The position numbers and the translations under genes are program-made. Below are positions 43,462 to 62,930 of a stretch of 64,000 nucleotides of DNA, piece after piece. The stretch lies in IMG/VR virus record IMGVR_UViG_3300042895_001344, positions 153,143 to 217,142 of that record; one strand, 5' to 3'. The first letter of the stretch is position 1. Each line of letters starts with the position of its first letter. The notes below the pieces were generated by a model. It was not told where the DNA came from, made no database searches, and saw only the letters and a list, made by a program, of their open reading frames with translations.

Positions 43462-43465
43462 GAAA

Positions 43466-43497
43466 TAGGGGTTGGTTTATTCTGACCCCCATTTTTT
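43466..43497 (+). terminator. Intrinsic terminator
   Basis: GGGGTTG...TGACCCC imperfect stem followed by a T-run. Confidence 0.55.
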
Positions 43498-43514
43498 AAT
43501 CCTAAATCTCTCCT

Positions 43515-43943: not shown

Positions 43944-44185
43944 TGAGTCAATTTATTTCTTCTTTTATTGAATCCATAAATCCAAAACCAAAGATGAAAT
44001 TTCACGCTAACTTACATAGAAACCAATGGTCAATATATCCATTACCTTTTGTTTATTTTTATTTTGAAACATGTCAACCAGATTCTCATGTATCAATTTG
44101 GAAAAACAAAATATGTGGAGTATATTTGTCCTTTAATTGGTTGAAACATACTTACAACATCGGAATCCACAAAACAATAAACTAA
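43943..44185 (+). CDS. Hypothetical protein
   Basis: 80-aa ORF coupled on both sides. Confidence 0.6.
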   Translation: MSQFISSFIESINPKPKMKFHANLHRNQWSIYPLPFVYFYFETCQPDSHVSIWKNKICGVYLSFNWLKHTYNIGIHKTIN

Positions 44186-46197: not shown

Positions 46198-46228
46198 TCC
46201 TCGAGGTTTATACTTCGGGGATTTTTTT
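46198..46228 (+). terminator. Intrinsic terminator at the convergence with the envelope module
   Basis: TCCTCGAGG-TTATA-CTTCGGGGA plus T-run. Confidence 0.75.
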
Positions 46229-47835: not shown

Positions 47836-47841
47836 TATTCG

Positions 47842-48570: not shown

Positions 48571-49415
48571 TATTTGTTATTTAAACCTATTGATATTTGT
48601 GTGTATCCTCTTATTGGGTCGGTATCTAATTTTAATGTAACGAATTTAAAATCTTTTATAATACCAACTTTAAATGTGGTAAATGATGAATTTGATTTTG
48701 GAAATGAAATACCACCTAAGTCATCTTTACCTTGCCATCTAATAACTTCATTACCAAATCCTACCATACCATGTATTCCTATTTTACCAATTCTTTTACC
48801 ACCACCAACATAGAAAGTTGATTCTTTTTTCCAATCTTCTTTACTAAGTGGAAAGTCGACATTGTTAATTTGACCATATGGATAATAGCTATTTTGGTCT
48901 ATTGCGTAAGTCATTACATAATCCATAATAAAATATCCTCTCTTGTCACCAATCGTTCCCCAATAAGAAATTTGTTTATTATTTGTATGTCCAAATCCAA
49001 AGGAGGTATAAACACGTTCTTTTCTAATAGTATCTCTTTTTCCACCTTCATATATATGAATTACACTTCTTTGTCTCCATCCGTAATCATCATACCAAAT
49101 ATAAGGCATTGGTTGATACCATCCCCAGTTTCCCCAATAGTAACCAAATTGATTATTTCTATTCCAATTTTGAACACGTACTCTACCACGTTGGTCTGGT
49201 TGTGATTGTTGAGGTTGATTATTTCTCCAACTACTTACATTATTTTGTTGTGGTACAGATGGTTGAACTCTTGTTTGAGTTGATTGTGATGTTTGTGATG
49301 ATGCTGGAACACTTCCACCAGTTTGTCTCCAAGAACTAACTTGGGAATATAACATTATTGTGCAGAATAATATTAATATTAATATTAAACCTGTAACTAA
49401 TAAAACCTTTTTCAT
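48570..49415 (-). CDS. Exported protein, probable small outer-membrane beta-barrel
   Basis: Signal peptide ...MLYS|Q; Gln-rich and aromatic low-complexity region; alternating Gly/aromatic strands. Confidence 0.55.
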   Translation of the reverse strand: MKKVLLVTGLILILILFCTIMLYSQVSSWRQTGGSVPASSQTSQSTQTRVQPSVPQQNNVSSWRNNQPQQSQPDQRGRVRVQNWNRNNQFGYYWGNWGWYQPMPYIWYDDYGWRQRSVIHIYEGGKRDTIRKERVYTSFGFGHTNNKQISYWGTIGDKRGYFIMDYVMTYAIDQNSYYPYGQINNVDFPLSKEDWKKESTFYVGGGKRIGKIGIHGMVGFGNEVIRWQGKDDLGGISFPKSNSSFTTFKVGIIKDFKFVTLKLDTDPIRGYTQISIGLNNK

Positions 49416-49591
49416 ACTGTTTCAGTTAAAATTGTGGTTAGTAAATAACCGGTTATTATTGGGAATGGTGAAAATATTAAAAAAAAGAACAATAACCTCC
49501 AAACCAATGGATCAACATTTGTACGGTGACTTAAACCACTACATACACCAAAAAAAACTTTGTCGTCGTGAACTCTTTTAAACTTTTTCAT
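49412..49591 (-). CDS. pspC: PspC-domain membrane protein (59 aa, absent from the ORF track)
   Basis: Hand translation MKKFKRVHDDKVFFGVCSGLSHRTNVDPLVWRLLFFFLIFSPFPIITGYLLTTILTETV; TGA overlaps the next ATG; TATTTATA 4 nt upstream. Confidence 0.85.
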   Translation of the reverse strand: MKKFKRVHDDKVFFGVCSGLSHRTNVDPLVWRLLFFFLIFSPFPIITGYLLTTILTETV

Positions 49592-49595
49592 ATAA

Positions 49596-49603
49596 TATAA
49601 ATA
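49596..49603 (-). promoter_or_regulatory. TATTTATA putative late-promoter motif
   Basis: Just after a terminator and before pspC. Confidence 0.55.
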
Positions 49604-49607
49604 TTAA

Positions 49608-49631
49608 AAAAGGGGTTATAAAACCCCTTTT
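49608..49631 (-). terminator. Intrinsic terminator
   Basis: AAAAGGGGTT-4 nt-AACCCCTTTT. Confidence 0.75.
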
Positions 49632-49849
49632 AAACATATTCTATCTAATTCTTCTTGCCTTAAACCTATGGTTGAATCTATTTGTCCTCCGTCGGATAAA
49701 ATGTTTACTAAATAAAGACCAAATTTTTTATCACTTATCTCAATTTCTTGCCCATGTATAAACCCCATATCCATCAATTTTAATCTCATACATGGTGTAC
49801 AATTTTCACAAGGATTATTTTGTGGAACGTCCACTACTTCATATTTCAT
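49616..49849 (-). CDS. feoA: FeoA-like SH3 protein with an N-terminal CxxCxxC
   Basis: RLKLMDMGFIHGQEIEI...IGLRQEE. Confidence 0.7.
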   Translation of the reverse strand: MKYEVVDVPQNNPCENCTPCMRLKLMDMGFIHGQEIEISDKKFGLYLVNILSDGGQIDSTIGLRQEELDRICLKGVL

Positions 49850-50577
49850 TATTTCGTGAATATACCTTTTTTAATCATTCTATCAAGGATGTTAGCACAT
49901 GCAATGTCTAAAGCTTTCTTTGTTGCAATACTAATTGTTGATTGATTGAACTTAATTGGGTCAATGGTCGCATCCGATAAAAGGGTTAACTCTCTTTTTG
50001 TTGTTGCCTCACCTAAACCTGACCCACCAAATACTACACCTGTTTCAGCATCAGTAAATCTAACCTGAAGACCTATACGAGTTACCATATTGTCTTTAAT
50101 ACCGTCTTTTAGGTTAATAGTTTCGTCTTCTGACACCGAGTAGTCATAACACTCAATCGTAACAAAATACTTCGCCAAATTGATTTTACCACGACCGTCT
50201 AATTTATTCTCAGAAATACCCGCAGCAGACGCTTGGAATTGTTTTACCATCCTATTCTTAATTTCTGTCTTATCCTCGGTAAATTTGAATCTATTTAAGT
50301 TTTCAAGGTATTCCATTGAAATGTTAGCAACACCCAAACCAACACGTTTTTCTTTTAACTCAGGATACATTTCATACATCTCATCAGAAATGCCTGCCTT
50401 TAATATTTGAATTGGAATTTGAGGACCGTCGTAATCCATGTAAGCACTTATGTCTCGTTTTTTTTCAAAATCTGCTTTATACTGTTCGGTTTTTGTTGAT
50501 CCTATTGTTTGTCCCATTGCATTATCTGCAATTAAACAGGTTAAAATAAAAATTAAAAATATTATTAAATGTCTCAT
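49849..50577 (-). CDS. CsgG/HfaB-like exported protein
   Basis: Signal peptide ...NAMG|Q; GVANISMEYL.N.NRFKFTE; IGLQVRFTDAETGVV.G.G.G; C-terminal A.KKAL helix. Confidence 0.65.
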   Translation of the reverse strand: MRHLIIFLIFILTCLIADNAMGQTIGSTKTEQYKADFEKKRDISAYMDYDGPQIPIQILKAGISDEMYEMYPELKEKRVGLGVANISMEYLENLNRFKFTEDKTEIKNRMVKQFQASAAGISENKLDGRGKINLAKYFVTIECYDYSVSEDETINLKDGIKDNMVTRIGLQVRFTDAETGVVFGGSGLGEATTKRELTLLSDATIDPIKFNQSTISIATKKALDIACANILDRMIKKGIFTK

Positions 50578-50586
50578 AGTTTTATA

Positions 50587-51330
50587 TTAAGGGTTCCATT
50601 TATTTAATGCACTTATGTAGTTACTCGTCATATGATCTTTGGCAGTATTACCTGTGAATACAGCTTTAAGATATTCACCAACTCTTTGCCAATCAATCAT
50701 CCATTTTTTAACTTTACCCTCACTATCAATACGTAATTCAGTATTAACGTGGTGATATCCAATATTTGGGGCACGAGTAACAACATCTAAATTATTAACA
50801 ATCCTTAATGATTCAATTGATGATTTATCAAAGTTCTGTTTGAATACTTTATTACCAACTCTTGGACTACCGATAGTACAACATATAATTTTATTTGATT
50901 TATAAATTGAATAAATCTCATATGCACATAAGGTAGAAACTGCAGCTCCCAAACTGTGACCGCAAACAATAATATTATCAACTTCACCCTCCCCACCTAA
51001 TGTGGATAATGCTTTTTCAAATGATTTATAAGTTTCGTCTTTAACAGCGTCCCAAGATGATTTAAATCCAATGTGAACTTTTTCACCATCTTGAACAAAT
51101 GGAACTTTATCAATTGATGCGTCGTTTTGGAAATCCTTTTTAGAAGAACTTCCTCTCCAAACGATATAGATAGATTTATCCTTTGTGGCAACAAATCCTT
51201 GTGTATCTGTTTTTTTATCGTCAATCCATTTAATTAATTTTAATCTTTGTGCTTTAAAATCAATGTCTTTTTGTTCTGAATATACTTTCTCGGTTAAACC
51301 GACATTGTATAGTATTTCGTTTTTTGTCAT
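50587..51330 (-). CDS. Class-3 lipase (alpha/beta hydrolase)
   Basis: VWRGS, VHIGF, GHSLG, TIGSPRVG, VNNLDVVTRAP, Y.HV, DH. Confidence 0.92.
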   Translation of the reverse strand: MTKNEILYNVGLTEKVYSEQKDIDFKAQRLKLIKWIDDKKTDTQGFVATKDKSIYIVWRGSSSKKDFQNDASIDKVPFVQDGEKVHIGFKSSWDAVKDETYKSFEKALSTLGGEGEVDNIIVCGHSLGAAVSTLCAYEIYSIYKSNKIICCTIGSPRVGNKVFKQNFDKSSIESLRIVNNLDVVTRAPNIGYHHVNTELRIDSEGKVKKWMIDWQRVGEYLKAVFTGNTAKDHMTSNYISALNKWNP

Positions 51331-51354
51331 TGTGTATTTGTTTTTGTTATAATA

Positions 51355-51591
51355 TTACTGTCTTGCTGGCCATATACCACGAGTGGCTATTATGTATTTC
51401 ATACCATCCATAGGTGGTTCCATTTTAGGTACCGCAAATAAATTTGGTGTTGCTCCGTATCTATCTTGCAGTAATACATATAACGCCTCATTTTCCCTTA
51501 TGTTTAATAATTGTCCGTTGCATTCTACATATCCTTGAGGAGCGTAGCCTCCTGCAAATAATTTAATTGCCCCAATTAATTCTTCTTCCAT
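51355..51591 (-). CDS. Stand-alone phage tail-collar domain protein
   Basis: IGAIKLFAGGYAPQGYVECNGQLL...ALYVLL...YG; YIIATRGIWP. Confidence 0.85.
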   Translation of the reverse strand: MEEELIGAIKLFAGGYAPQGYVECNGQLLNIRENEALYVLLQDRYGATPNLFAVPKMEPPMDGMKYIIATRGIWPARQ

Positions 51592-51594
51592 AGT

Positions 51595-52668
51595 TTATTG
51601 TGTTTTTGTTTTAGATTGATCACCCTTCTTTAAAAATATATCAAATATTGTTTTAGGACTGTATTCTACAAGTAATATTAAACCCTTCCTCAACGTAGAG
51701 TTTTTTACAACGTGATTTAAAATATCTTTAATAACCTCTTTAATGGCGAAATTTTTAGTGTCAAAATATGTTCCATCAAAATATCTTGGACTTGTTCCCT
51801 CACCACCTGGTGAACCGTGATGAGCACCTATAGAGGTACGCCAATAATCAGCATGATTTTGCCATTCAGGAACTGAAACCAATTCAGGTGAATCAAAAAA
51901 TAAATTCCACGATAATACATTACCCTTTTGTAACATATTACCAGTACCTAAGTTAAAAAGATTTAAAAAGTATTGATTAAACTTATCTAATTTGTGATCA
52001 CTTGTTGTTACCATTCCTCCTATTTCTACATTGATATGTCCTGTACTATATGCTTCTTCCTTTATTGCAAATTCAGGATTTTTAAATCTTGGTGATAAAC
52101 CCTTTCCGAGTTGAAATATAGGTTCTTTAGGATTTCCTGGTAGATGTGTTAAAACACGAATAGCATTTTCTTTGTTGATAGGATACTTACGAGAACTGTA
52201 TTTTAATAATGGCCAAATTGCTCTTAATAGACCACCTTGATTTTCACCTGGTGTTAACCAAATTTTTCCCTCAACCATCATATCCGCAGCAATTTCCTTT
52301 GTGTCTTCATTAACCCATCCTCTTTGTCCCGTAACTGTTACTTCCACATTGATACAAATCTCATCTCCAATCCACATCCCTTGTTGAGGACAGATTATGG
52401 AATAAATTCTACCTTCATTGGTATATCCTATTCTTGAAATATAAGGAGCAAATTGTACATAACAACGTTTTGGGTCTTTTTCCCCATTTAGGGTATTCCA
52501 ACTAAACATTGGCCATTTAACACCCCATTGTCTTTGTAGTAAATTAATGTTATCCATATTACCCAACATAGGTAATGAGGTTAAATCTGTGGTAGGATAT
52601 AGCATTTTCTTTTGTTTTTCAGATGGAAAACCACCTTGCCATCCCGTAGGAATTTGTTCGTTTGTCAT
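51595..52668 (-). CDS. Hypothetical protein
   Basis: 357-aa ORF; TATTTATA at 52679-52686 upstream. Confidence 0.7.
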   Translation of the reverse strand: MTNEQIPTGWQGGFPSEKQKKMLYPTTDLTSLPMLGNMDNINLLQRQWGVKWPMFSWNTLNGEKDPKRCYVQFAPYISRIGYTNEGRIYSIICPQQGMWIGDEICINVEVTVTGQRGWVNEDTKEIAADMMVEGKIWLTPGENQGGLLRAIWPLLKYSSRKYPINKENAIRVLTHLPGNPKEPIFQLGKGLSPRFKNPEFAIKEEAYSTGHINVEIGGMVTTSDHKLDKFNQYFLNLFNLGTGNMLQKGNVLSWNLFFDSPELVSVPEWQNHADYWRTSIGAHHGSPGGEGTSPRYFDGTYFDTKNFAIKEVIKDILNHVVKNSTLRKGLILLVEYSPKTIFDIFLKKGDQSKTKTQ

Positions 52669-52691
52669 ATTCTTTTAATATAAATACACAA

Positions 52692-52716
52692 AAAAGGGAG
52701 TTTTTAACTCCCTTTT
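52692..52716 (-). terminator. Intrinsic terminator
   Basis: AAAAGGGAGTT-TTT-AACTCCCTTTT. Confidence 0.8.
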
Positions 52717-52719
52717 ATA

Positions 52720-52968
52720 CTAACCTTCTGTTTCTTCTTTCTTTTTGTGAGAGAATTTATCCAAAGTATCTGCACCCATTCCAATTCCCGTGATTAACAT
52801 CACCGCATTCACCAATTCAGGTGATGGAGCGAAATCCGCGTGAGAGAACGAATTTAAAATCATCGTAATACATAGGAATAAAGCACCTATCATTGCTATT
52901 ACCGGCTTTACCGATATTGATCCTCTTTCATCTTTGAAAATTTCAATAACCCATTGTTTAAAATTCAT
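52720..52968 (-). CDS. Two-TM small membrane protein (holin-like)
   Basis: Two hydrophobic helices, charged C-terminal tail. Confidence 0.55.
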   Translation of the reverse strand: MNFKQWVIEIFKDERGSISVKPVIAMIGALFLCITMILNSFSHADFAPSPELVNAVMLITGIGMGADTLDKFSHKKKEETEG

Positions 52969-52997
52969 AGTTTTTTATTTTTTGTCTTTTGTTTATT

Positions 52998-53666
52998 TTA
53001 TCCTTCCGTATGCATTTCTGCATTTTCATCTTTAATTTTACCACATTTTAAACACTCCTCAATGCCATCACCATCCAAGTCACCCCAAACGTGTTCACAT
53101 TGTCTATGTGCGAAATACATATCTATTTTACCGTCACCATCAAAATCAATACCATCTATTGTACCATCACCATCTTCATCAACCTCAACACCTGTTCTTG
53201 GTTGTGATTTGAAAGGACTTTCAACAACTTGAGGATTATTTGGTTCTGATTTTACCTCTACTTTGTTTGCCTCAATTAAGTTGATTTCATGTGCGTTCTT
53301 TGCGGCTTGCACAAATGCATCTGGAATCAATGGAGTGTTATTTGGTGGAGTTACAGGCATATCAGCAGTATTACTCATTGACGTACCATCTTCTTCGTCC
53401 ATTTTCTGAACTAACATCTTATCCTTATCAGTATCACTAAACCAATAGTCAATGATTTTACCATAACTACCGATAAACGCTCCTAATAATAATAAAAGAA
53501 GTTCTTTCCATTCTCCTTCAATCGTAGATTTATTTAATATACCAAAGAACATTCCTCCAATAATAATCATAAATCCACCTAACACTATCGCAGTGATATA
53601 CCACCTGCGTTTCATCATATTTGCTAATAAATCCTTAAATCCGCTTGGCGGTTGTTCATTACTCAT
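52998..53666 (-). CDS. Two-TM membrane protein with DxDGDG Ca-binding-like repeats and a CxHxW...CxxC tail
   Basis: DEDGDGTIDGIDFDGDGKID; CEHVWGDLDGDGIEECLKCG. Confidence 0.65.
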   Translation of the reverse strand: MSNEQPPSGFKDLLANMMKRRWYITAIVLGGFMIIIGGMFFGILNKSTIEGEWKELLLLLLGAFIGSYGKIIDYWFSDTDKDKMLVQKMDEEDGTSMSNTADMPVTPPNNTPLIPDAFVQAAKNAHEINLIEANKVEVKSEPNNPQVVESPFKSQPRTGVEVDEDGDGTIDGIDFDGDGKIDMYFAHRQCEHVWGDLDGDGIEECLKCGKIKDENAEMHTEG

Positions 53667-53683
53667 CTTTTTTTAATTTAAAA

Positions 53684-53998
53684 TTACCATTTAGGTGCTT
53701 CTTCTTTAAACTCATCACCTTCTTTTTTCTTAGGTTTTGGTGCTGGCGCCGGTTTAGCACTACCGTCTCCACCTTTATTGATGATTACAGTTTTACCACC
53801 ACCCGATTGTTGAGTTTGTGAATTGGTAATGTTGATTACAGGTGCCGCTTGTTGAACGGGAGCCTCTTTTTCGTCACCACCTGTTAATTTTGTTGTAAAC
53901 CAACCACCCACACCTAATGTGATGGTGCTTACTAAACCGATAATGATGTTCTTAATTGAACCACCTGTACTTTCTGATTTTTCTTGTTCTTCTGCCAT
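53684..53998 (-). CDS. Single-TM protein with a Pro/Gly/Lys-rich tail
   Basis: IIIGLVSTITLGVGGWF followed by low-complexity sequence. Confidence 0.65.
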   Translation of the reverse strand: MAEEQEKSESTGGSIKNIIIGLVSTITLGVGGWFTTKLTGGDEKEAPVQQAAPVINITNSQTQQSGGGKTVIINKGGDGSAKPAPAPKPKKKEGDEFKEEAPKW

Positions 53999-54030
53999 AA
54001 TTTTGTGTTTTTTGTCTTTATATAATTATC

Positions 54031-54399
54031 TTAAATTTTATTAAAATCTGTAATTCCTAACATATTACCCGCAACATCGTATAATGCAATCCTATACGCT
54101 GAAGATGGTAAAGCGGATGTATACACCCTTAAAATGTTATCACCAACCTTAACCTCACTTGTTGATTTTGATACCACTCTATTGGAAATATCAAAAATCT
54201 TAACGGTTACAGTTTGAGCAACATCACTTTTTATGTTCATTGCAACTTCATTTGTTATAAATGAAGTTTCTAATTTTAATCCCACTGAACTTGAGATTTT
54301 AAGGTTGTCACTAATCACTTGTGGTTGCATTGGTATGTCTACTTTTCTACATCCAACAAGTAAGATTAATCCAAAGAGTACGAGAGATACTTTTTTCAT
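54031..54399 (-). CDS. Lipoprotein consisting of a T9SS-CTD-like Ig domain
   Basis: LVGC lipobox; VTVKIFDISNRVV...G.N.L.V.TSALPSSAYRIAL. Confidence 0.6.
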   Translation of the reverse strand: MKKVSLVLFGLILLVGCRKVDIPMQPQVISDNLKISSSVGLKLETSFITNEVAMNIKSDVAQTVTVKIFDISNRVVSKSTSEVKVGDNILRVYTSALPSSAYRIALYDVAGNMLGITDFNKI

Positions 54400-54411
54400 T
54401 TTTTGTCTTGT

Positions 54412-54765
54412 TTAATTTATAATTATTCTTGTTTTACCTATTTGATTATTATTTTGATCCTTTAACACGACACTTAGGTTTTTTGTCGGTAAAGTATTAG
54501 TAAATATTTTAAGAGAGTTTAATCCTACTTTACCAGTAAACCTTTCCCTTGATACTACTTGGTTTTGAACCGTATCAATCATTGTTAAAGTATATACTCC
54601 TCCTGTAGTTAAATTAATATTAATAACATCCCCGTTTTTTACCTTATTTTCAGATAAGGAGAAAAATTCCACATTTGTCGGTGACACAGGTGTAAACGGA
54701 ACCATTTTTTTGCACGATATTATAAAAACCATACAACACAATAATATAATTTTGATACGTTTCAT
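54412..54765 (-). CDS. Lipoprotein paralog with a T9SS-CTD-like domain
   Basis: IISC lipobox; YTLTMID...VV...G.NSLKIFTNTLP. Confidence 0.55.
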   Translation of the reverse strand: MKRIKIILLCCMVFIISCKKMVPFTPVSPTNVEFFSLSENKVKNGDVININLTTGGVYTLTMIDTVQNQVVSRERFTGKVGLNSLKIFTNTLPTKNLSVVLKDQNNNQIGKTRIIIN

Positions 54766-54768
54766 ATT

Positions 54769-55662
54769 TTAAAATTGAAAGTTTGTTCCTATCATAAATA
54801 GAATTGGATTACTCTTTTTATACCCAACCGATTCACTTAATTTATTCCAAGTTGTGTTATATCTAACATTAGTATTCAATACAAATTTTTTAGTTATTTT
54901 CCAATCAATAGATGTACCATAATATAAGTCCAAATTGAAATCATCTACATATGCTAAATCCGATTCAGTCCCATCTTTGAATACTTTGTAGATATCACTC
55001 ATTGCAAATATTTGTGGTGAGATGTTTACTCTCTTTGTTTTGAATGTATACGTATACATTGCCATACCTCTATAACTAATTTGACTTGATGATGGCATTT
55101 GTGGATATATTAAATCTTTAAAATCACCATTTTCATCTACTATATATTTTCCTTCCCATTGACCTTGATAACTTCCCCAAAACGATTTTGACGCAATCAC
55201 ACTATAACCAAATGTTCCAAACTTTTTAGTTCTGAATACATCAATGAATGATAGAGAAATATCTTTTTGAAAATCAAAATCGGTTGAATAGAATGATTGT
55301 AATGTAGTAGTTCTTGTATTCGTATTTCTACTGAAACCATAACCCACACCATAGTAGTTCCATATTGGATTTATTGATGATGCGAATGAGTGACCCCATT
55401 TACCATTTTTAGATGATTTACTATATCCTAAATTTAAGGTAGTAGATACTTGTTTTCCAATTACACCTACTGATAAATTTGAGGATGAAAGAACATCTTT
55501 TGAAAAATCAATATATGACTCTAATATACCTAAATTATTCCAATCACCACTTTCTCCAAATAATTCTTTTGGTGATAGTTGTAAGGTATCTGGTTTTACA
55601 ATTTGTGCGTTTGTAACAAATGTTGTCAAAATTAGTGACAGAATTAATAATAGTTTTTTCAT
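54769..55662 (-). CDS. Outer-membrane beta-barrel protein
   Basis: Signal peptide ...VTNA|Q; amphipathic strands; ISPQIF; C-terminal Phe (GTNFQF). Confidence 0.75.
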   Translation of the reverse strand: MKKLLLILSLILTTFVTNAQIVKPDTLQLSPKELFGESGDWNNLGILESYIDFSKDVLSSSNLSVGVIGKQVSTTLNLGYSKSSKNGKWGHSFASSINPIWNYYGVGYGFSRNTNTRTTTLQSFYSTDFDFQKDISLSFIDVFRTKKFGTFGYSVIASKSFWGSYQGQWEGKYIVDENGDFKDLIYPQMPSSSQISYRGMAMYTYTFKTKRVNISPQIFAMSDIYKVFKDGTESDLAYVDDFNLDLYYGTSIDWKITKKFVLNTNVRYNTTWNKLSESVGYKKSNPILFMIGTNFQF

Positions 55663-58271
55663 TAATTTATTTTTATTTTTAATGATTTTCCATCTTTATT
55701 AACTGCGTCCGTTGAACCTATTGAAATTAAACCCAATATGTTATCCAATTTTGTGTTTGACGAAAATGAAATCTTATATGTTGTTGTCTTATCTAAACTT
55801 GTACTACCATCACTTACCAAAGAACCTAAATTAATGTAATTACCCTTGTTGGTTGCATAGTTGGTAGGTGAACCTTTTGTGGTAAATTGTATTCCTTTAA
55901 AATTTAAGACCGAATTATCGTAGTTTAATTGAAATTGAGTTCCTACCACGTTTTGTTGTAATGGGTCAAATGTGATGTAAGCATAAACACTATCACCAAT
56001 TACTTCGGTCATAATAGATGCGTTGATGTCAGTTGATATTGGTGTACTCATTGATGTTCTAACTGTCATCGTTGTGATATTATTTGATGGAGGAGTTGCC
56101 GAATGTGATAAGTTTACATCACCTTTCCAACTAACAGCCAAATCGTAGTTATAACTTATTACATTATCTAATAAACTAAAATTATAAGTTTTTCCTGCAA
56201 AATTTTGAAAAGAACTCCAAGTTGACTTACCAATTTTATTATAAATTGAATCAGGTATCAAACGTATTGTATTATCCAAAGTATAATTACTAACTAAGTT
56301 TTGTACACCCGTTAAATTTTGTAATAATTTGAAACAATCCGCTTCATTAAATAAACCATCATCATTTACATCTGCGTTTTTATATTGAATTCCGTAAGTA
56401 AACTCATTACCACTTTGATTTCCAAATATACCACCATTTGCCAATTCCTTAAATGCCAAATACACATCTGATACTGTTACGATACTATTATACAAAGTTT
56501 TTAATTGTGTACTATCATATTCTTGTAATTCCATTTTGTGTTGTTTGAACGCACCTTGTTGGGTAAGTCCAATACCACATGCAAATGCATAGTCGGTATT
56601 TGAACCATTCATATTTCTAATATATTGATTATATGCAGAAGTTCCATCGGTTACTTTTGTTAATGGAGATGGAACAGTATATTGTGCCCAACCATTATTG
56701 TCATGTGATGTATATGTAACAGGCCCATCATACGCATCTAATATTTTTACATTTGATATTTTCGTTGGGTCTATACTTCCAACTTGTCTCATATCAATTA
56801 ACAATCTACTATTACCATTTAACCAACTTGCATTTGGATTTGTATAAGACCACTCTACCCCACCCGGAGATATAGTTGCTTTGTATGATGCAGGTGCCGA
56901 TACGAATTGGTAACTTAATCCCCATCCACCATAACCCGATGTTGATACTCCATTACGAGTTGAACCAACATATTCACTTAACCCCTGTACTACTTTAATA
57001 TAAACTTCTTTTGTTTGTCCGTCTGATATTACACCAGCATGTACCGCTGCGGCTGGAATATATGAATCACTTGTATAGATATCGGTTCCCCATATTGCTC
57101 CACCTGTTGTACCTGTTATTGTTATTCTATATATCTTACCAATATCCGATTCATTAAATTGTTGCATATCGGATGTTCCTGCTGTTAATGGAATACCAGT
57201 TGTATAAATCTTTGAAGTATCTATTTGATTTGAAAGAAATACTTTACCCAAACCACTCAATGATTTATAACCATCCGCCGCTGCCCAATTTGAATATGTG
57301 TCGTTTCTTTTGAATATCTGTGCTAAGAATTTTGTTTTATCTATTGAAGTATTAAACTTAAATCCAAATAATGCTTTTATAGTTTCTCCGTTTGAATGTG
57401 TTACTGAATTGGTATAGAACTCCGTAAATGTTGCATCATCGGGATTAGACCAAGTTCCATATTCAATTACATATGGGTTACTCCAATTGTTTGATAAGTC
57501 ATTCCATTGATTACCATTCCATTTTGTTACTGCATAATCCTCACTATGATTATATCCGTTTGGTTCACCATTTGCCCAATTATTATACACACCTGGTCGG
57601 TTTCCGGCAGTTGGTCCGTTGGATGTTTTCATCACAGTCCCCTTTTCAGGACCCGCATCAATTACCCAAGTTCCATCTATAACTTCATCTGTTGCTGCAA
57701 ACCATATATTTGATTGTGGTACATTAGCTTGAATAAATAAATCTTCCGATGATGATGTTAGTGTTAATAGATAACCCGTCTGTCCTTTGAATGTTGTTGT
57801 TAACGCAATTGCTCTTGCGTTTGTATAAGTTGTACCGGTTGTTACGGGTTTGTAAAAGTGACCATTTACTCCATTGAAATAATATCCTGGTTGATTAACA
57901 GTTGCGGCCACTGAAATATTAATATCACCAATTACTGTTCCTGTGTTTATTTTTAGAGACGCTAACGCAGTATTAATACTTGCCATTGTTCCAGTTACCA
58001 CTAAACGAGTTTTATTACCACTTAAAGTAAATCCACTTGCTGCCGTTAAACCCGTTGTTGTGTTTAATACGAATGTTGTACCTGATGGTGGATTGACTAA
58101 ACTTATAGAAGCAAGTAAAGTAGATGTTGCACCAAATCCACTTAATGAAAATCCACTAGCGTCTTGTCCTGTGGTATTCACAGTAAATGATTTAGGGTCT
58201 GGAGCCGTTACTGACTGACCAAACCCTAAAAATGATATAAATAAAAATAATACTACTAATAGTTTCTTCAT
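55662..58271 (-). CDS. Exported adhesin-like protein: C-type lectin + LCCL + dockerin-like + cohesin-like domains
   Basis: Signal peptide ...LGFG|Q; GYLLTLTS.SE, WANGEPN, WNDL; IWGTDIYTSDS.I.AAAVHAG; ADVNDDG; GTQFQLNYD. Confidence 0.8.
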   Translation of the reverse strand: MKKLLVVLFLFISFLGFGQSVTAPDPKSFTVNTTGQDASGFSLSGFGATSTLLASISLVNPPSGTTFVLNTTTGLTAASGFTLSGNKTRLVVTGTMASINTALASLKINTGTVIGDINISVAATVNQPGYYFNGVNGHFYKPVTTGTTYTNARAIALTTTFKGQTGYLLTLTSSSEDLFIQANVPQSNIWFAATDEVIDGTWVIDAGPEKGTVMKTSNGPTAGNRPGVYNNWANGEPNGYNHSEDYAVTKWNGNQWNDLSNNWSNPYVIEYGTWSNPDDATFTEFYTNSVTHSNGETIKALFGFKFNTSIDKTKFLAQIFKRNDTYSNWAAADGYKSLSGLGKVFLSNQIDTSKIYTTGIPLTAGTSDMQQFNESDIGKIYRITITGTTGGAIWGTDIYTSDSYIPAAAVHAGVISDGQTKEVYIKVVQGLSEYVGSTRNGVSTSGYGGWGLSYQFVSAPASYKATISPGGVEWSYTNPNASWLNGNSRLLIDMRQVGSIDPTKISNVKILDAYDGPVTYTSHDNNGWAQYTVPSPLTKVTDGTSAYNQYIRNMNGSNTDYAFACGIGLTQQGAFKQHKMELQEYDSTQLKTLYNSIVTVSDVYLAFKELANGGIFGNQSGNEFTYGIQYKNADVNDDGLFNEADCFKLLQNLTGVQNLVSNYTLDNTIRLIPDSIYNKIGKSTWSSFQNFAGKTYNFSLLDNVISYNYDLAVSWKGDVNLSHSATPPSNNITTMTVRTSMSTPISTDINASIMTEVIGDSVYAYITFDPLQQNVVGTQFQLNYDNSVLNFKGIQFTTKGSPTNYATNKGNYINLGSLVSDGSTSLDKTTTYKISFSSNTKLDNILGLISIGSTDAVNKDGKSLKIKIN

Positions 58272-58274
58272 AAA

Positions 58275-59927
58275 TTATTCAACAATCAAATTAATCTTGT
58301 TTCCGTTTCCATCAACCGCGTCAGCTAAAACTGTATAAAATAAACCCGCCGTATTTGTTATGGTTTCTTTCGGTATAAAAGTTAATTTGTAAGGTGTCCC
58401 TATTTTAATTCTACCAGTTTTCATTTGATCCATTGAACCGAATGTTAATCTACCATCTCCATTTGTTGAGAAGTTAGTTACGTTTGGACCGGCGTCAAAT
58501 GATATATTATCAAATGTTAATTTTGAATTGTCATATTGTAAGATTACCTCTAATCCCGCTAATCCGTCTTTTGTTAATGTTCCCGTTAATACAACTTTAC
58601 CATTAACAATTGTAGAGTTTAATCCTAATGTTGCCTTTTCAATTGTTGGTGTATATGACATTGATTGAACTGAAAATGATTTGATTGATGAGGTACTTTT
58701 TTCATTAATTGAGTTTAAGTAAGTTCCTGCTGCAATTCTACTTGCGATTACATCAGGGTCAGATGAATGAGACCAATCCAAATCACCACCCCATGCGTAT
58801 ACCATATCTACCGATTGATTTGATGATGTTACTTTTGTTTTGTAAGTAGGTACACCATCTAACCAACTTTGATTTAATAAACCACTATACCATTTGAATA
58901 AACCACTATTTGTACTCAATGGAATCCATGCACTATCTTTTACATTAGCGATACCCATTACATATGCAAACATATAATATGAATCACTTTCACTAAACAC
59001 ACTTTTACTCTTTGTAATTTGACCTATATTCTTTTGTAATTGTGGTCTTGTAAAATAAGTTTTTACACCCGCGATATCCGTTTGTGAAATACCTAAAAAT
59101 GCTTTATATGCGTCTGATACTGTTATAATGTTATTCATAAAAGTTTTTCCTGTTGCACCATACATCCACACCGCCAAACTATCTCCCACTTTCACTTCTG
59201 TTGTAAATGTCGCCTCACCACTTGCATCTAATACTTTTGTTGCAATTGGTGTTACTGTAAAATCAATTGTACCATCTGTTTTTATTGGAAATAATGCAAC
59301 ACTGTGTGCGGTAATATCATATCCTGTTGGGAATAAAACTCTTAGTTTGAACTGAGACGTATTACCAACAACATTTGTTAAAGACATTGTACCTGGATCA
59401 GTTGTAATTGGTGTAATGTATGCACTTGTTGCATCAATTGAATATGATAAGTCTAATTTATGAATGTCGGTATACGCACCCAAATCTTTGATTACATATT
59501 TTTGAGTTGCAACATCTCCGTTGATAGATGCATCGGTTCTTTGAACAGTTAATTGACCAACATTCCAATCTGCGTTGGCTGCGTAACCCCATGGAGATAT
59601 TAGATATTGTGCATATAAATCTTTAGCTGTAATACTATTTGCTGCACTTGAAGTAAATTTATAAGACGACCAACCTGTGTAGAATGTTTGAACTGATGTT
59701 CCTTGTGAGAACGTCGTTGAAACATATGAAAGTGCCTTATTGTTAAATTGATATCTCAACCAAAAATAACGAGGCGTGGTTGTACCTCTCGCAACCGTGT
59801 ATTTAACTGAAACCGTATCACCAACCTTTAACCCTGTTGTAGGTGTCACAGATTGGTTGACAGTTAATTGTGCATTTGTTGCTATGGATATTACTAGTAT
59901 TCCAAGTAGCGTTAATAGTTTTTTCAT
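58275..59927 (-). CDS. Exported protein with dockerin-like and cohesin-like domains, paralog of 55662..58271
   Basis: Signal peptide ...ATNA|Q; ITVSDAY; GGDLDWSHS; GLEVILQYDNSKLTF. Confidence 0.7.
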   Translation of the reverse strand: MKKLLTLLGILVISIATNAQLTVNQSVTPTTGLKVGDTVSVKYTVARGTTTPRYFWLRYQFNNKALSYVSTTFSQGTSVQTFYTGWSSYKFTSSAANSITAKDLYAQYLISPWGYAANADWNVGQLTVQRTDASINGDVATQKYVIKDLGAYTDIHKLDLSYSIDATSAYITPITTDPGTMSLTNVVGNTSQFKLRVLFPTGYDITAHSVALFPIKTDGTIDFTVTPIATKVLDASGEATFTTEVKVGDSLAVWMYGATGKTFMNNIITVSDAYKAFLGISQTDIAGVKTYFTRPQLQKNIGQITKSKSVFSESDSYYMFAYVMGIANVKDSAWIPLSTNSGLFKWYSGLLNQSWLDGVPTYKTKVTSSNQSVDMVYAWGGDLDWSHSSDPDVIASRIAAGTYLNSINEKSTSSIKSFSVQSMSYTPTIEKATLGLNSTIVNGKVVLTGTLTKDGLAGLEVILQYDNSKLTFDNISFDAGPNVTNFSTNGDGRLTFGSMDQMKTGRIKIGTPYKLTFIPKETITNTAGLFYTVLADAVDGNGNKINLIVE

Positions 59928-59929
59928 AG

Positions 59930-60577
59930 TTATTTAACAAATAATTTAGTTATTAATTTATCCGCCGATTTTTTTAAGGCGTTACTAAGTGACGTTTGAT
60001 TAAATTGACCTCCCTCATCAACAATTAATGTTGACATTGATATTTCTGAAGATGATTCTTCGACCATTATTTCCTTTTCTTTTTTACCATCCTTATATAA
60101 AGTTCCTTTCATACGAATGACAACTTCTTCTTCATTTTTGTGAAAAACAGAAATGTTCTTTTTTGTTGTAAGAACATCTAAATAAATGATTTGAACTTTT
60201 AATTTGTATGGGGCTGAAGGTGTTAAATCATAACCCTTTTCTTGTAAGAATTCTTCCAATGTATTTTTTACACCGAAAGCTAAATTTCTATTACCTGCCA
60301 ATTTACCCATCTTAACTTCATTGGTAACACTCTCCACCCAAATATGGTCTTCAGCCACATAGAATATATTTTCAGGTGAGTTCTTGAATGTACCATCAAT
60401 CCTCCACGAAATCCAATTTGAGATGTCTCTTGTTATTTCTCTTTGGCCTGAAAATTCCAAAACCGCCATGGATATACCGAATATCATTCCAAATATTACC
60501 CATGATATCGCAAAGTATAAAAAACCTAAAAAGATTTTTTCTTTAATATTAATTGATAGTGTTCTTAATTTTTCCAT
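59930..60577 (-). CDS. Membrane-anchored CsgG-like protein (paralog of 49849..50577)
   Basis: N-terminal TM helix; LAFGVKNTLEEFL; FNQTSLSNALKK. Confidence 0.55.
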   Translation of the reverse strand: MEKLRTLSINIKEKIFLGFLYFAISWVIFGMIFGISMAVLEFSGQREITRDISNWISWRIDGTFKNSPENIFYVAEDHIWVESVTNEVKMGKLAGNRNLAFGVKNTLEEFLQEKGYDLTPSAPYKLKVQIIYLDVLTTKKNISVFHKNEEEVVIRMKGTLYKDGKKEKEIMVEESSSEISMSTLIVDEGGQFNQTSLSNALKKSADKLITKLFVK

Positions 60578-60772: not shown

Positions 60773-61555
60773 ATGGGAAATTTTAAACATCTCACAGAAT
60801 TGGAAATTCAACAAATGACATTTGATTGGAGATACCGAGGATTTACAACATTAGAACTCTTAACAGAAGAAGAATGTGACGAAATCAATGACGAACTTGA
60901 ACGTTTACGTCAGGAGAGAAAAGGAACATTAACAGACGATGGTAAGGAGTGGGGTGAATGGGATCCATTCGCATATCCACATAAATTATCGGATAAACTT
61001 GCAAAACTATATGTTCACCCTAAATTAATTGAAGCTTGTCAGTTTCTAATGGAAGGTGAAATTGTTGGGATGCAAAGTTGGGCATACTTTAAACCACCAG
61101 GACAATTAGGTAGAGATATGCACCAAAACGCCTTTTACACGGGTTGTAAACACAATGAAATTATCAATACGGCATTAGCATTGGATAACCACGACAACAG
61201 TAATGGTTCCGTGTGGAACTACGAAGGTTCACATAGATTACAAACCTTACCAATTGAGGTTGATGAGGAAAGAACAAAAACTAATCCATCGTTTTGGAGA
61301 AATGAAAGAGGTAAACCTTGTATTATGCCTGAGGGACACGATTTCCGTAAGGTAGAAGGAATTCTAAAAAAAGGACAAGTGGTTTTATTACACTCACATT
61401 GTGTACACGGGTCGGAAGCTAACAACTCAAATAGAATGAGAAGAAACTTTTTAGGTGGATTCTTAAAAAAAGGTGCATTTTACAATCAGGGAAGTCATAT
61501 GAAACGTGAACCAATTGATGTATATGAACTTAGAGATAAACATTGGAGTGAATAG
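60773..61555 (+). CDS. PhyH-family 2OG-Fe(II) dioxygenase with a non-canonical HQN motif
   Basis: GFTTLELLT.EEC, YFKPPG, MHQN, GSHR, VHGSEAN.S.RMR. Confidence 0.85.
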   Translation: MGNFKHLTELEIQQMTFDWRYRGFTTLELLTEEECDEINDELERLRQERKGTLTDDGKEWGEWDPFAYPHKLSDKLAKLYVHPKLIEACQFLMEGEIVGMQSWAYFKPPGQLGRDMHQNAFYTGCKHNEIINTALALDNHDNSNGSVWNYEGSHRLQTLPIEVDEERTKTNPSFWRNERGKPCIMPEGHDFRKVEGILKKGQVVLLHSHCVHGSEANNSNRMRRNFLGGFLKKGAFYNQGSHMKREPIDVYELRDKHWSE

Positions 61556-61693: not shown

Positions 61694-61766
61694 GCCTCGT
61701 TAGCTCAGTTGGTAGAGCAAGTCATTTGTAATGATTAGGTCTGCGGTTCAAGTCCGTAACGAGGCT
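61694..61766 (+). tRNA. trnT: tRNA-Thr(TGT)
   Basis: GCCTCGT/ACGAGGC acceptor, AGTCA-TTTGTAA-TGATT anticodon arm, GGTTCAA T-loop. Confidence 0.93.
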
Positions 61767-62036
61767 CAACAGGTGACGACGGTGGTGTGACCCCACTGTC
61801 TATGAATCTCAACTATCCGTTTGAATCTAGATGTAGAACGGTGAGAGTAGAGTTACTATAAGTTGGAGTAATTAACCATTAAGCGAAAAGTAACCTCCGA
61901 TTCATGAATCAGTCTCGGACATGATGTACATAGATGGTACGAAAAACCTGTAACTTTTTGAAACTAACTCAACGAGGACTTTGTTAACCAGTGCATGACA
62001 CGGAGGTGCAACTTAAGTTGGGTTGGAATCAAACAC

Positions 62037-62109
62037 GCTTCCTTAGCTCAGTTGGTAGAGCGCAAAACTGTTAATTTTGAAGTCGGGGGATCGTGACCCT
62101 CAGGGAGCG
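62037..62109 (+). tRNA. trnN: tRNA-Asn(GTT)
   Basis: GCTTCCT/AGGGAGC acceptor, CAAAA-CTGTTAA-TTTTG; T-loop ATCGTGA. Confidence 0.88.
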
Positions 62110-62202
62110 CAACGTGATAATCACTCCACGCAAGTGGTAAGCACCCGGCAGTAACACCGGGATGGCAATGTGGTTATTAAGAGGTAAGGAAAAGACTAAA
62201 AT

Positions 62203-62277
62203 GGGAATGTAGCTCAGTTGGTTAGTAGCAGTGCTCTCATAAAGCAAAGGTCTTTGGTTCAAATCCAAACTTTCCCA
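62203..62277 (+). tRNA. tRNA with CAT anticodon (elongator Met or Ile2; not initiator-like)
   Basis: GGGAATG/CTTTCCC acceptor with one mismatch, loop CTCATAA, GGTTCAAATCC. Confidence 0.8.
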
Positions 62278-62471
62278 CACGATTCGGTTAGTCACCGAAT
62301 AGTATGTCCAATATGATGAGAAATGGTTTGACAACCATATGGAAACGTACATTGACGTATAGGAAGAACGTCAGGGGACATCACCCCGACCTCGTGAGGA
62401 CGAAATGATTATTCCTAACCCGAAAGGGGACAGCTAAGACACCTGTGAGTTGGATAAATAAAGGTGTCAAC

Positions 62472-62557
62472 GGAGAGATGGCAGAGTTGGTCTATCGCGA
62501 CAGTCTTGAAAACTGTAGACTGTAACAGGTCCGTGGGTTCGAATCCTACTCTCTCCG
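62472..62557 (+). tRNA. trnS: tRNA-Ser(TGA)
   Basis: GGAGAGA/TCTCTCC, ACAGT-CTTGAAA-ACTGT, long variable arm, GGTTCGAATCC. Confidence 0.95.
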
Positions 62558-62820
62558 CTGTAGAGTTTGCCCGTGGTAACGGTCTAATGGGGAAACCTTG
62601 TAGACTTCTCGCGTCAAAACCCAAAACACTGATCTACTGGTGCTTGGGCTAAATGTAGAAAAAAAACGGGATCTTTTTTAATCACAAATAAAAATGTGAG
62701 CTATAATAAAGTAGCCAATTATAAGCCAACATAAAGCTGTTGGATACAGACGGAGTAATTAACCAGAGTATAGTGCAACAATTGTGATATTATAACAAAT
62801 ACCCATTTGAGTGATTATTT

Positions 62821-62892
62821 GTTCTTGTCGACTAAGGGTTAGGTCACCTCCCTTTCACGGAGGTAATACGGGTTCGAATCCCGTCGAGAATA
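62821..62892 (+). tRNA. trnE: tRNA-Glu(TTC)
   Basis: GTTCTTG/CGAGAAT, CCTCC-CTTTCAC-GGAGG, GGTTCGAATCC. Confidence 0.92.
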
Positions 62893-62930
62893 CATTTTGT
62901 TTATTGGAATATTTTTTGTATATTATCATC

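Follow-up and report, generated by a model that had tools for sequence, protein, structure and literature searches.

The window analyzed here is the terminal 64,000 nucleotides (positions 153,143 to 217,142) of the IMG/VR record IMGVR_UViG_3300042895_001344, a 217-kb contig of a large freshwater jumbo phage of Bacteroidota. Positions 54031–59927 of this window encode, on the minus strand, two adhesin-like proteins with signal peptides, a putative outer-membrane barrel, and two small lipoproteins, designated LP2 and LP1. [quoted passage not shown]

Genes of the adhesin–lipoprotein cassette

The cassette opens with a gene (59930–60577, minus strand) for a 215-aa membrane protein with a weak YajG/Lipoprotein_16-like domain (PF03923; E 2.2e-5, 24.7 bits against a cut-off of 25), which is 40–42% identical to the 156–165-aa signal-peptide proteins opening the same cassette in distant relatives, and which marks the start of every complete cassette. 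Adhesin A (58275–59927, minus strand; 550 aa) contains a Sec signal peptide ending in ATNAQ, an N-terminal domain, a dockerin-like segment, a GDL/GDV..SHS motif, and a C-terminal cohesin-like domain, but no CTD. Full-length orthologues of adhesin A occur in three distant cassettes (L005, L008, and L011; 25–27% identity), of which L008 is from a marine relative. Adhesin B (55662–58271, minus strand; 869 aa) contains a Sec signal peptide ending in GFGQS, followed by a C-type lectin domain (Lectin_C, residues 164–268), an LCCL domain (residues 391–450, E 5e-14), a weak dockerin-like match (residues 605–649; 13.1 bits, cut-off 22.9), and a cohesin-like domain (residues 759–824; 21.5 bits, cut-off 24.1), again without a CTD. 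The N-terminal part of adhesin B varies between related phages, giving lengths of 638–869 aa. The two adhesins share their last ~300 residues (24% identity, E 5e-15), and both stop at the end of the cohesin-like domain. Although adhesin A gave no direct hit to the cohesin family (PF00963), some of its close homologues carry a precomputed PF00963 hit, and relatives of the adhesins pass the Pfam cut-off, as in the adhesin of the related locus L069 (32.3 bits against 24.1).

Downstream of adhesin B lies a gene (54769–55662, minus strand) for a 297-aa protein with a signal peptide, about 14 predicted strands, and a C-terminal NFQF. These features fit an outer-membrane barrel, but the AF2 model is poor (pLDDT 44) and unusable for a fold search, and no Pfam or NCBIfam family, including PorP/SprF and PorV, was matched at E ≤ 1. 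Among the complete cassettes, this gene was seen only in those with two adhesins, and in most but not all of them. LP2 (54412–54765, minus strand; 117 aa, lipobox IISC) and LP1 (54031–54399, minus strand; 122 aa, lipobox LVGC) follow, and are paralogues of each other (28% identity, E 4e-11). In LP1, residues 1–17 form the lipoprotein signal and residues 18–36 a linker, with the remaining residues, 37–122, forming a predicted CTD-like β-sandwich that ends in DFNKI. LP2 likewise carries a putative CTD-like β-sandwich.

Beyond LP1, a 104-aa single-pass membrane protein ending in PKW (53684–53998, minus strand) always follows the LP gene or the fused adhesin, its position being conserved in every complete cassette, including the distant ones. 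Two more membrane proteins are encoded at 52720–53666 (minus strand), one of 222 aa carrying a DxDGDG dockerin/EF-hand-like repeat and a Cys-rich tail, and the other of 82 aa, with their order conserved in related phages. The most conserved gene of the cassette (49849–50577, minus strand) encodes a 242-aa CsgG/HfaB/LpoB-like protein with a signal peptide, which is 82–98% identical across related phages and about 51% identical in the distant cassettes; it has no Pfam hit, but its protein-language-model neighbours are CsgG/HfaB/LpoB clusters (0.94), and all ten best named hits fall in one clan. Finally, a 535-aa protein (46228–47835, minus strand) contains a signal peptide, a small Cys-containing head, about 250 aa of Ala/Pro/Lys-Glu low-complexity linker, and a C-terminal barrel-like domain. 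Its C-terminal ~220 aa are conserved in the distant cassette L005 (33% identity) and are weakly similar to the 297-aa barrel (E 5e-4).

Relationship of LP1 and LP2 to the T9SS sorting domain

Scoring against TIGR04183 and Por_Secre_tail (PF18962), which had been proposed beforehand as a check, placed the lipoproteins below the curated thresholds. LP1 was measured at 16.8 bits on TIGR04183 (cut-off 23) and 15.7 bits on PF18962 (cut-off 27), and LP2 gave no hit, whereas DUF3244 (PF11589) scored slightly higher with LP1 (20.2 bits, cut-off 25; E 6e-4) and is its best single Pfam hit. Of 37 family members, 20 hit Por_Secre_tail weakly (best E 1.6e-5) and 25 hit DUF3244 weakly. No protein in the 217-kb contig passes the TIGR04183 cut-off; the adhesins therefore do lack a fused CTD.

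Fold and profile–profile comparisons, in contrast, tie LP1 to the type-A CTD. The AF2 model of LP1 (pLDDT 93) is a seven-strand sandwich, with strands at residues 40–121. In an exhaustive structural search of 48,161 PDB chains with VIA-align, the CTD of mirolase ranked first (8qb1_A; Z 11.0, rmsd 1.8 Å over 77 residues), that of PorU second (6za2_B; Z 10.3), and that of NucA bound in the translocon seventh (8glk_D; Z 9.8), with the FspA and PorZ CTDs also appearing. Generic Ig-like and macroglobulin domains reach Z ~10 as well, however, and thus the fold match alone is not specific. Foldseek against the PDB returned only generic Ig and CBM folds plus DUF3244, whereas its top 30 AFDB matches are dominated by the last ~85–110 residues of T9SS type-A proteins (E ~1e-6; rmsd 1.3–1.7 Å over 81–87 residues for the best), and all non-viral ESM-Atlas neighbours carry Por_Secre_tail. 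Single-sequence and profile searches of PDB sequences with LP1 or the family alignment, of which LP2 is a member, gave nothing significant. In an hhalign comparison, however, the family alignment matched 20 genuine CTDs from a Flavobacteriales MAG with a probability of 95.2% (E 2.5e-8, 71 columns).

The conserved motifs of the CTD are retained only in part. The PNP motif of the first strand, invariant in the true CTDs, is absent from the LP family, and GxY (motif D) is replaced by SxY, with the Tyr nearly invariant. The near-invariant and functionally important Lys close to the C-terminus of CTDs (motif E; PMC10994853, PMC10202324) is kept in 45 of 45 LP1 orthologues (DFNK[IL]), a Lys being found within the last five residues in 26 of 44 LP2 orthologues and 20 of 33 distant members. 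The lipobox Cys is present in all 122 distinct family members examined. The canonical surface-export motif of Bacteroidota lipoproteins, C-X-K-(D/E)2 directly after the lipidated Cys (PMC5080379), occurs in 21 of 45 LP1 orthologues, 1 of 44 LP2 orthologues, and 5 of 33 distant members; in the window itself, LP1 (CRKVDI) carries a partial motif and LP2 (CKKMVP) none.

Fused and split forms among related phages

The decisive evidence is comparative. Related loci in IMG/VR number at least 431. The gene order is the same in about 60 IMG/VR loci and in cassettes as distant as 25% adhesin identity, and in the single-adhesin cassettes the adhesin stop and the LP start are at most 2 nt apart or overlap. 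A sister clade has a 633–638-aa orthologous adhesin with a canonical fused type-A CTD (residues 553–632 in L070) that, as a positive control for the HMM scoring, passes both cut-offs (PF18962, 36.4 against 27; TIGR04183, 34.3 against 23), and has no LP gene, the next gene starting 7 nt after the adhesin stop. Among 63 complete cassettes, 34 have two CTD-less adhesins and two LPs, 7 have one of each, and 22 have one adhesin with a fused CTD and no LP, without exception. This rule nevertheless rests on few independent events; an independent-contrast test found only one or two supported contrasts between the fused and split forms, which cannot reach significance. Furthermore, the LP family is not close to the phages' own fused CTDs (hhalign probability 2–13%), and the idea that the LPs are recent fission products of that CTD was therefore dropped.

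A search for homologous proteins returned only near-identical metagenomic copies and so did not show distant or cellular relatives; the adhesin gave no tblastn hit in the INPHARED phages, and the region gave no nucleotide hit. The original prediction started from the premise that cellular Bacteroidota proteins of dockerin–GDV–cohesin architecture usually end in a fused CTD. This premise holds for the sister phages, but found no confirmation in cellular genomes, the adhesin family not having been found in 150 sampled Flavobacteriales genomes, apart from one phage contig binned into a MAG. A metatranscriptome run was found to hold only fragmentary contigs from related strains, which is not evidence of transcription.

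A complex model of adhesin A (residues 21–550) with LP1 (residues 18–122) scored 0.65, against a best control of 0.00. That mark was reached by 58 of 80 solved complexes and by 2 of 110 mismatched pairs, although these counts hold only roughly because custom alignments were used. The predicted interface includes the last residues of the adhesin (548–550) and LP1 residues 31–34, just before the sandwich, which is where a fused CTD would be joined. The LP sandwich makes more than 100 contacts over most of its strands, however, which may leave too little surface free for the SprA/PorV pocket.

Interpretation and comparison with known systems

LP1 and LP2 are best explained as phage-encoded lipoproteins whose only folded part is a divergent homologue of the type-A CTD, each being the dedicated partner of one of the two CTD-less adhesins encoded just upstream, such that the sorting domain that sister phages carry fused to the adhesin is here supplied in trans on a lipid anchor. 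In the proposed mechanism, both proteins would cross the inner membrane by Sec, with the adhesin cut by signal peptidase I and the LP lipidated and cut by signal peptidase II; the LP sandwich would then dock in the periplasm on the C-terminal cohesin-like domain and N-terminal domain of the adhesin; and, after export by the T9SS, the complex would stay on the infected cell through the lipid, instead of being cut off by PorU and released or tied to lipopolysaccharide. The lipobox, the CTD fold and profile-level homology, the conserved operon, the strict match between the numbers of LPs and CTD-less adhesins, and the fused form in sister phages are established by the analysis, whereas LP1–adhesin binding rests on a model alone, and production of the proteins, recognition of the LP domain by the T9SS of an as yet unidentified host, export of the split form, its lipid anchoring, and the purpose of the adhesins are inferred. 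The fast evolution of the adhesins and their lectin and LCCL domains suggest that they remodel or mask the surface of the infected Bacteroidota cell. On present evidence, this explanation is somewhat more likely than not. The original interpretation is thus partly supported: of its two alternatives, a split, trans-acting sorting signal is what the comparative data point to, whereas membrane-tethered CTD decoys that jam the host T9SS are not supported.

The most serious alternative, possible although less likely, is that the LP serves only as an outer-membrane lipid anchor or chaperone, binding its adhesin through a CTD-derived Ig-like domain that the T9SS no longer recognizes, with the split form either held in the periplasm or brought to the surface by the Bacteroidota lipoprotein export pathway or by the CsgG-like and barrel proteins of the cassette, which could provide a T9SS-independent route. 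The burial of much of the sandwich in the complex model, the loss of PNP and GxY, the sub-threshold HMM scores, the conservation of the CsgG/HfaB-like and barrel proteins in the same cassette, and the export signal in about half of the LP1 orthologues, which would suffice for surface exposure without the T9SS, are consistent with this view. However, the fused canonical CTD of the sister phages shows that this adhesin family is T9SS cargo, the C-terminal Lys is kept in all 45 LP1 orthologues, neither LP in the window carries a full export signal, and the CsgG-like and barrel genes are also present in fused-CTD phages, so they do not replace the T9SS.

The remaining readings were rejected as unlikely. 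A decoy or superinfection-exclusion role in the manner of T5 Llp or Cor, in which lipid-tethered CTD mimics would occupy PorV/SprA or another receptor to block secretion, gliding, or adsorption of further phages, is compatible with the CTD-like fold, with the existence of receptor-blocking phage lipoproteins such as T5 Llp (PMC9586334), and with the fast divergence of the LPs (37–99% identity, with neighbouring genes at 87–98%); but a decoy has no reason to vanish exactly when the adhesin carries its own CTD or to be duplicated together with the adhesin, a specific complex with the adhesin was modelled, and no similarity to any PHROG family, Llp and Cor types included, was found. Still less likely is a two-component spanin formed by the LP, as the outer-membrane lipoprotein, and the 104-aa protein, as the inner-membrane partner. 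A T4-like phage needs spanins (pseT.2 and pseT.3 in T4), and the LP gene is always followed by a gene for a small type-II membrane protein, but the 22 fused-CTD cassettes keep the 104-aa protein without an LP, the LP is a well-folded predicted β-sandwich unlike typical o-spanins, there are two LP copies, the gene order is the reverse of the usual one, and no PHROG spanin hit was obtained. Coincidence, with the LPs being ordinary DUF3244-like Ig-fold lipoproteins whose resemblance to CTDs and position have no functional meaning, is likewise very unlikely. Although DUF3244 is the best single Pfam hit, its structures match at Z 8.2–9.2, and stand-alone small CTD-like proteins also exist in cells, the LP family is found only in viruses in the ESM Atlas, synteny with abutting genes is conserved down to 25% adhesin identity, the LP count follows the adhesin count and the LP is missing when the CTD is fused, and the complex model supports binding.

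A more far-reaching reading, which remains tentative and rather doubtful, is that the T9SS can export a non-covalent complex whose sorting domain is supplied in trans by a lipoprotein, the cargo ending up lipid-anchored on the cell surface without PorU processing. This would be a new targeting and anchoring mode of the T9SS, evolved by jumbo phages to decorate the cells they infect with fast-evolving adhesins. T9SS cargo is defined by a CTD fused in cis, and literature searches found no paper describing a CTD supplied as a separate subunit, a lipidated CTD, or phage-encoded T9SS cargo. The fused and split forms make a natural matched pair with which to ask what the T9SS actually recognizes, whether it can carry hetero-oligomers, and whether a lipid can pass the lateral gate of SprA. 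The finding also shows that an abundant lineage of freshwater jumbo phages, with thousands of near-identical homologues in metagenomes and related contigs reaching 335 kb, invests a conserved cassette of more than 10 kb in the inferred remodelling of the envelope of its Bacteroidota host. If the LP sandwich works as a portable tag, it could also be used to display proteins on Bacteroidota surfaces.

Among known systems, the closest is the type-A CTD itself, as in mirolase, PorU, NucA, FspA, and RgpB, a seven-strand β-sandwich of ~80–90 residues at the very C-terminus of a Sec-exported protein. Such CTDs are the best structural matches to LP1 (Z 8.3–11.0). The LP domain is also C-terminal, but differs in being phage-encoded and fused to no passenger, preceded only by a lipobox and a ~20-residue linker, and in carrying a signal for signal peptidase II rather than I, in addition to its sub-threshold scores and altered motifs. 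DUF3244 proteins of Bacteroides (structures 4g5a, 3d33, and 3sd2), which have no known function to compare with and for which a literature search found no study, are stand-alone proteins of about 100–140 aa with the same β-sandwich (Z 8.2–9.2), whereas the LP family is phage-only, always lipidated, and always paired with an adhesin gene. In type-B CTD systems with PorP/SprF-like partners, such as SprB–SprF, a large adhesin gene is likewise followed by a gene for a ~300-aa outer-membrane barrel, and the cargo stays on the surface bound non-covalently to a dedicated outer-membrane partner (PMC9143113, PMC12618676); however, no type-B CTD or PorP/SprF HMM match was found in the adhesins or the 297-aa barrel, and the partner proposed here is a lipoprotein with a type-A-like CTD, not a barrel. 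Receptor-blocking lipoproteins (T5 Llp, Cor) are also small, fast-evolving, and encoded by lytic or temperate phages next to genes for host-recognition proteins (PMC9586334), but those systems do not predict that LP presence tracks the lack of a CTD in the adhesin. Finally, the C-terminal cohesin-like domain and EF-hand/dockerin-like segment of the adhesins recall the cohesin–dockerin scaffolds of cellulosomes, although the dockerin hit is not significant, there are no enzymes and no scaffoldin, and the modelled partner of the cohesin-like domain is a CTD-like sandwich, not a dockerin.

Genomic context of the adhesin-lipoprotein cassette

The window is the last 64 kb of a single 217,142-bp contig with 31.6% G+C, and it encodes a T4-like major head protein, a portal, and a large terminase. 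The nearest cultured relatives, at only ~38% capsid identity, are Flavobacterium phage 'immuto' and a Microcystis phage. The record was rated 65% complete by CheckV, and related IMG/VR contigs reach 298-335 kb; the contig is therefore a fragment of a jumbo phage lineage that is very abundant in freshwater metagenomes, with LP1, one of the two small lipoproteins described below, alone having 3,616 database hits, the best 120 of which are all at least 91% identical. In the whole contig, proteins with Sec or lipoprotein signals were found to be almost confined to one minus-strand cassette at 46228-60577.

The arrangement described in the original prediction—that is, two adhesin-like proteins stopping right after a cohesin-like domain, followed, past one barrel gene, by two lipoproteins of ~120 aa—was confirmed. 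Adhesin A (58275-59927, 550 aa) and adhesin B (55662-58271, 869 aa) both have signal peptides, and adhesin B also has C-type lectin and LCCL domains. The two share a C-terminal module of ~300 residues, consisting of a dockerin-like segment, a GD[LV]..SHS motif, and a cohesin-like domain, and both stop at its end. Next comes a 297-aa signal-peptide protein with about 14 predicted strands and a terminal Phe, which is probably an outer-membrane barrel, although the model is poor (pLDDT 44) and no family matches it. Then come LP2 (54412-54765) and LP1 (54031-54399), paralogous lipoproteins of 117 and 122 aa, respectively. The genes abut or overlap, with gaps of -1 to 32 nt, as in one operon. A 2017 freshwater metatranscriptome holds fragmentary contigs, most only 85-95% identical, over parts of the barrel and both adhesin genes in 54031-59927, but these come from related strains and may be carried-over DNA.

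Other proteins of the cassette show features of their own. The ~100-aa membrane protein (53684-53998, minus strand) that always follows the LP gene, or the fused adhesin described below, ends, together with its homologues in two distant metagenomic cassettes (L005 and L008) and in the fused-adhesin relative L070, in a conserved ..(P)KW or ..DW, which may be a C-terminal docking motif. A 222-aa membrane protein (52998-53666, minus strand) carries a DEDGDGTIDGIDFDGDGKID repeat (dockerin/EF-hand-like) and a Cys-rich tail, and could be an inner-membrane partner for the cohesin-like domains of the adhesins; in L008, a 224-aa lipoprotein with a thrombospondin type-3 repeat lies immediately after the LP gene, ahead of the ~100-aa membrane protein, whereas the slot of the 222-aa protein is after it. 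The most conserved gene of the cassette (82-98% identity across relatives) encodes a 242-aa signal-peptide protein (49849-50577, minus strand) without a Pfam hit, whose protein-language-model neighbors are CsgG/HfaB/LpoB clusters; a phage-encoded CsgG-like envelope protein would be unusual. A 535-aa protein (46228-47835, minus strand) has a signal peptide, a small Cys-containing head, about 250 residues of Ala-, Pro-, and Lys/Glu-rich low complexity, and a C-terminal barrel-like domain ending ..SRMVL, a layout resembling a small autotransporter; it is conserved in distant cassettes, where it ends ..LQF.

Around the cassette lie auxiliary genes for a ClpB-like double-AAA ATPase (40325-42412, plus strand), a T4-type RNA ligase (44137-45255, plus strand), a 2OG-Fe(II) oxygenase (47842-48570, minus strand), a class-3 lipase (50587-51330, minus strand), and a PhyH-family dioxygenase (60773-61555, plus strand), as well as a 78-aa phage tail-collar-domain protein (51355-51591). 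A cluster of five tRNA genes (Thr-TGT, Asn-GTT, Met-CAT, Ser-TGA, Glu-TTC) is located at 61694-62893 (plus strand), close to the end of the contig.

Relationship of the lipoprotein domain to the T9SS type-A CTD

By the curated HMMs, the lipoprotein domain is not a T9SS CTD: LP1 scores 16.8 bits on TIGR04183 (cut-off 23) and 15.7 bits on PF18962 (cut-off 27), with DUF3244 scoring slightly better (20.2 bits against 25). Across 37 diverse family members, 20 hit Por_Secre_tail weakly and 25 hit DUF3244. By structure and profile comparison, however, the relationship is evident. With a 37-sequence alignment, AlphaFold2 gave a model with pLDDT 93 and a seven-strand sandwich at residues 40-121. Exhaustive alignment of this model to 48,161 PDB representatives ranked the mirolase CTD first (Z 11.0), the PorU CTD second, and the NucA CTD as bound in the translocon seventh, with the FspA and PorZ CTDs also appearing; macroglobulin-type Ig domains reach Z ~10 too, and DUF3244 structures Z 8-9. 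In AlphaFold DB clusters and the ESM Atlas, the non-viral neighbors are almost exclusively the C-terminal ends of T9SS type-A cargo, with alignments running to the last residue of both proteins. Furthermore, the LP family profile matches the profile of 20 genuine CTDs taken from a Schleiferiaceae MAG at 95.2% probability (E 2.5e-8). The family lacks the PNP motif and has SxY in place of GxY, motifs that specify the fold rather than contacts with the translocon (PMC10994853), while the one near-invariant functional residue, a Lys close to the C-terminus, is kept in all 45 LP1 orthologues. The domain is therefore regarded as a divergent homologue of the type-A CTD, but not as a member by the curated definition.

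An exhaustive HMMER search of 1.84 billion representatives found only 53 clusters of this family, nearly all of which are 117-128-aa proteins with a lipobox, and the Atlas clusters holding them are 100% viral. Many members, including 21 of 45 LP1 orthologues, carry C-X-K-(D/E)2 straight after the lipidated Cys, the optimal Bacteroidota lipoprotein surface-export signal (PMC5080379), which points to a Bacteroidota host and to surface exposure. LP2 orthologues, however, largely lack the motif, and the LP1 of the window (CRKVDI) has only part of it.

Fused and split forms across related cassettes

Three distant metagenomic cassettes (L005, L008, and L011; adhesin ~25% identical) share one order, namely YajG-like protein, adhesin, LP, ~100-aa membrane protein, and, further on, a CsgG/LpoB-like protein and a linker-plus-barrel protein, with the LP start overlapping the adhesin stop or falling within 2-13 nt after it. 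The order is the same across about 60 IMG/VR relatives, in which the adhesins and LPs are the fast-evolving genes (42-96% and 37-99% identity, respectively), next to a CsgG-like gene at 87-98%. Some two-adhesin cassettes carry extra genes, such as one for a second barrel-like 254-aa protein after the 297-aa barrel (L052:6767-7531 and L055:2486-3250) or for a 227-239-aa unknown protein between LP1 and the 104-aa membrane protein (L033, L038-L040, L042, and L061).

More detailed comparison of the relatives in which no LP had been detected proved decisive. In one clade (L070, L072, and L116-L135), the single adhesin is 633-638 aa and ends in a canonical type-A CTD (PF18962 36.4 bits, TIGR04183 34.3 bits, both above cut-off; PNP, GNY, and a terminal K..IK[FLV]), and the gene for the 104-aa membrane protein starts 7 nt after its stop, leaving no room for an LP gene. 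The other apparent gaps were found to hold divergent LPs. Over 63 complete cassettes, 34 have two CTD-less adhesins and two LPs, 7 have one and one, and 22 have one fused-CTD adhesin and no LP, without exception. This is a Rosetta-stone relation, showing that this adhesin family is T9SS cargo and that the LP stands where the CTD would be. However, on a tree of the CsgG-like marker the architectures change about seven times, of which well-supported branches force only 2-3 per architecture, and only 1-2 supported independent contrasts separate fused from split forms, so that the rule cannot be given a p-value. The architecture does not follow this marker tree, and the modular cassette thus appears to recombine. 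In addition, the LP family is not close to the phages' own fused CTDs (hhalign 13%); a recent gene fission is not shown, whereas functional replacement is.

Binding of LP1 to adhesin A is supported, but not proven, by a predicted complex. A complex prediction with adhesin A residues 21-550 and LP1 residues 18-122 gave a score of 0.65 against a best control of 0.00, a mark reached by 58 of 80 solved complexes and 2 of 110 mismatched pairs, although these counts hold only roughly because custom alignments were used. The three runs agreed on 96-100% of contacts. The predicted interface joins the N-terminal domain of the adhesin (residues 54-129) and its cohesin-like domain (435-440, 464-469, 523-532, and the last residues 548-550) to most strands of LP1, and includes LP1 residues 31-34, just ahead of the sandwich. 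The geometry fits a CTD detached from the C-terminus of the adhesin, but the extent of burial is also an argument that little surface may remain for the SprA/PorV pocket.

Proposed mechanism and comparison with known T9SS cargo

The best-supported statement is that each LP is the cognate, lipid-anchored, trans-supplied CTD of one CTD-less adhesin. Whereas the gene arrangement, the profile-level homology, and the match between LP and CTD-less adhesin numbers are direct results of the analysis, LP1-adhesin binding rests on a model, and export of the complex by the host T9SS is inferred from the fused form in sister phages, the retained Lys, and the published exit route, CTD-first through a lateral opening of SprA to the external membrane surface (PMC10994853). 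The interpretation originally proposed is partly supported: of its two alternatives, the split, trans-acting sorting signal is favored by the comparative data, but the membrane-tethered decoy is not.

The main rival is that the LP has become a pure anchor or chaperone, in which case surface delivery, if any, would use the lipoprotein export signal or the CsgG-like and barrel proteins of the cassette itself; this reading is considered possible but less likely. The decoy, Llp-like, and spanin readings, all regarded as improbable, predict neither the loss of LP in fused-CTD phages nor its co-duplication with the adhesin, and no family support was found for them among PHROG families. With respect to spanins, a third predicted lipoprotein of 72 aa (..LTLTAC GSGS..), encoded outside the cassette at 43243-43461 (plus strand), overlapping a longer minus-strand ORF (43218-43538), and giving weak PHROG hits of unknown function, may be the real o-spanin candidate. 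As for the adhesins themselves, the lectin and LCCL domains, variable N-termini, and rapid divergence suggest binding of surface glycans, which could make infected cells or their debris sticky, or mask receptors.

The adhesin family was not found in 150 sampled Flavobacteriales genomes, with the one exception of a 3.4-kb contig of a related phage (adhesin 63% identical) binned into a Schleiferiaceae MAG from Lake Mendota, which is either a binning error or at best a weak hint to the host; that MAG has at least 22 type-A CTD proteins. Literature searches found no description of a split or lipidated CTD, of T9SS piggy-backing, or of phage-encoded T9SS cargo. UniProt-derived viral models do, however, include uncultured-phage proteins automatically named 'Secretion system C-terminal sorting domain', one of which, at 636 aa, has the length of the fused adhesins. 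Bacteria also have minimal proteins of ~110 aa consisting only of a signal peptide and a type-A CTD, with no lipobox (L097:1486-1818, minus strand, among the loci examined, and AlphaFold DB entries A0A4R5DJH3 and A0A1A9LFB9), and these might be cellular counterparts of a trans-acting CTD.
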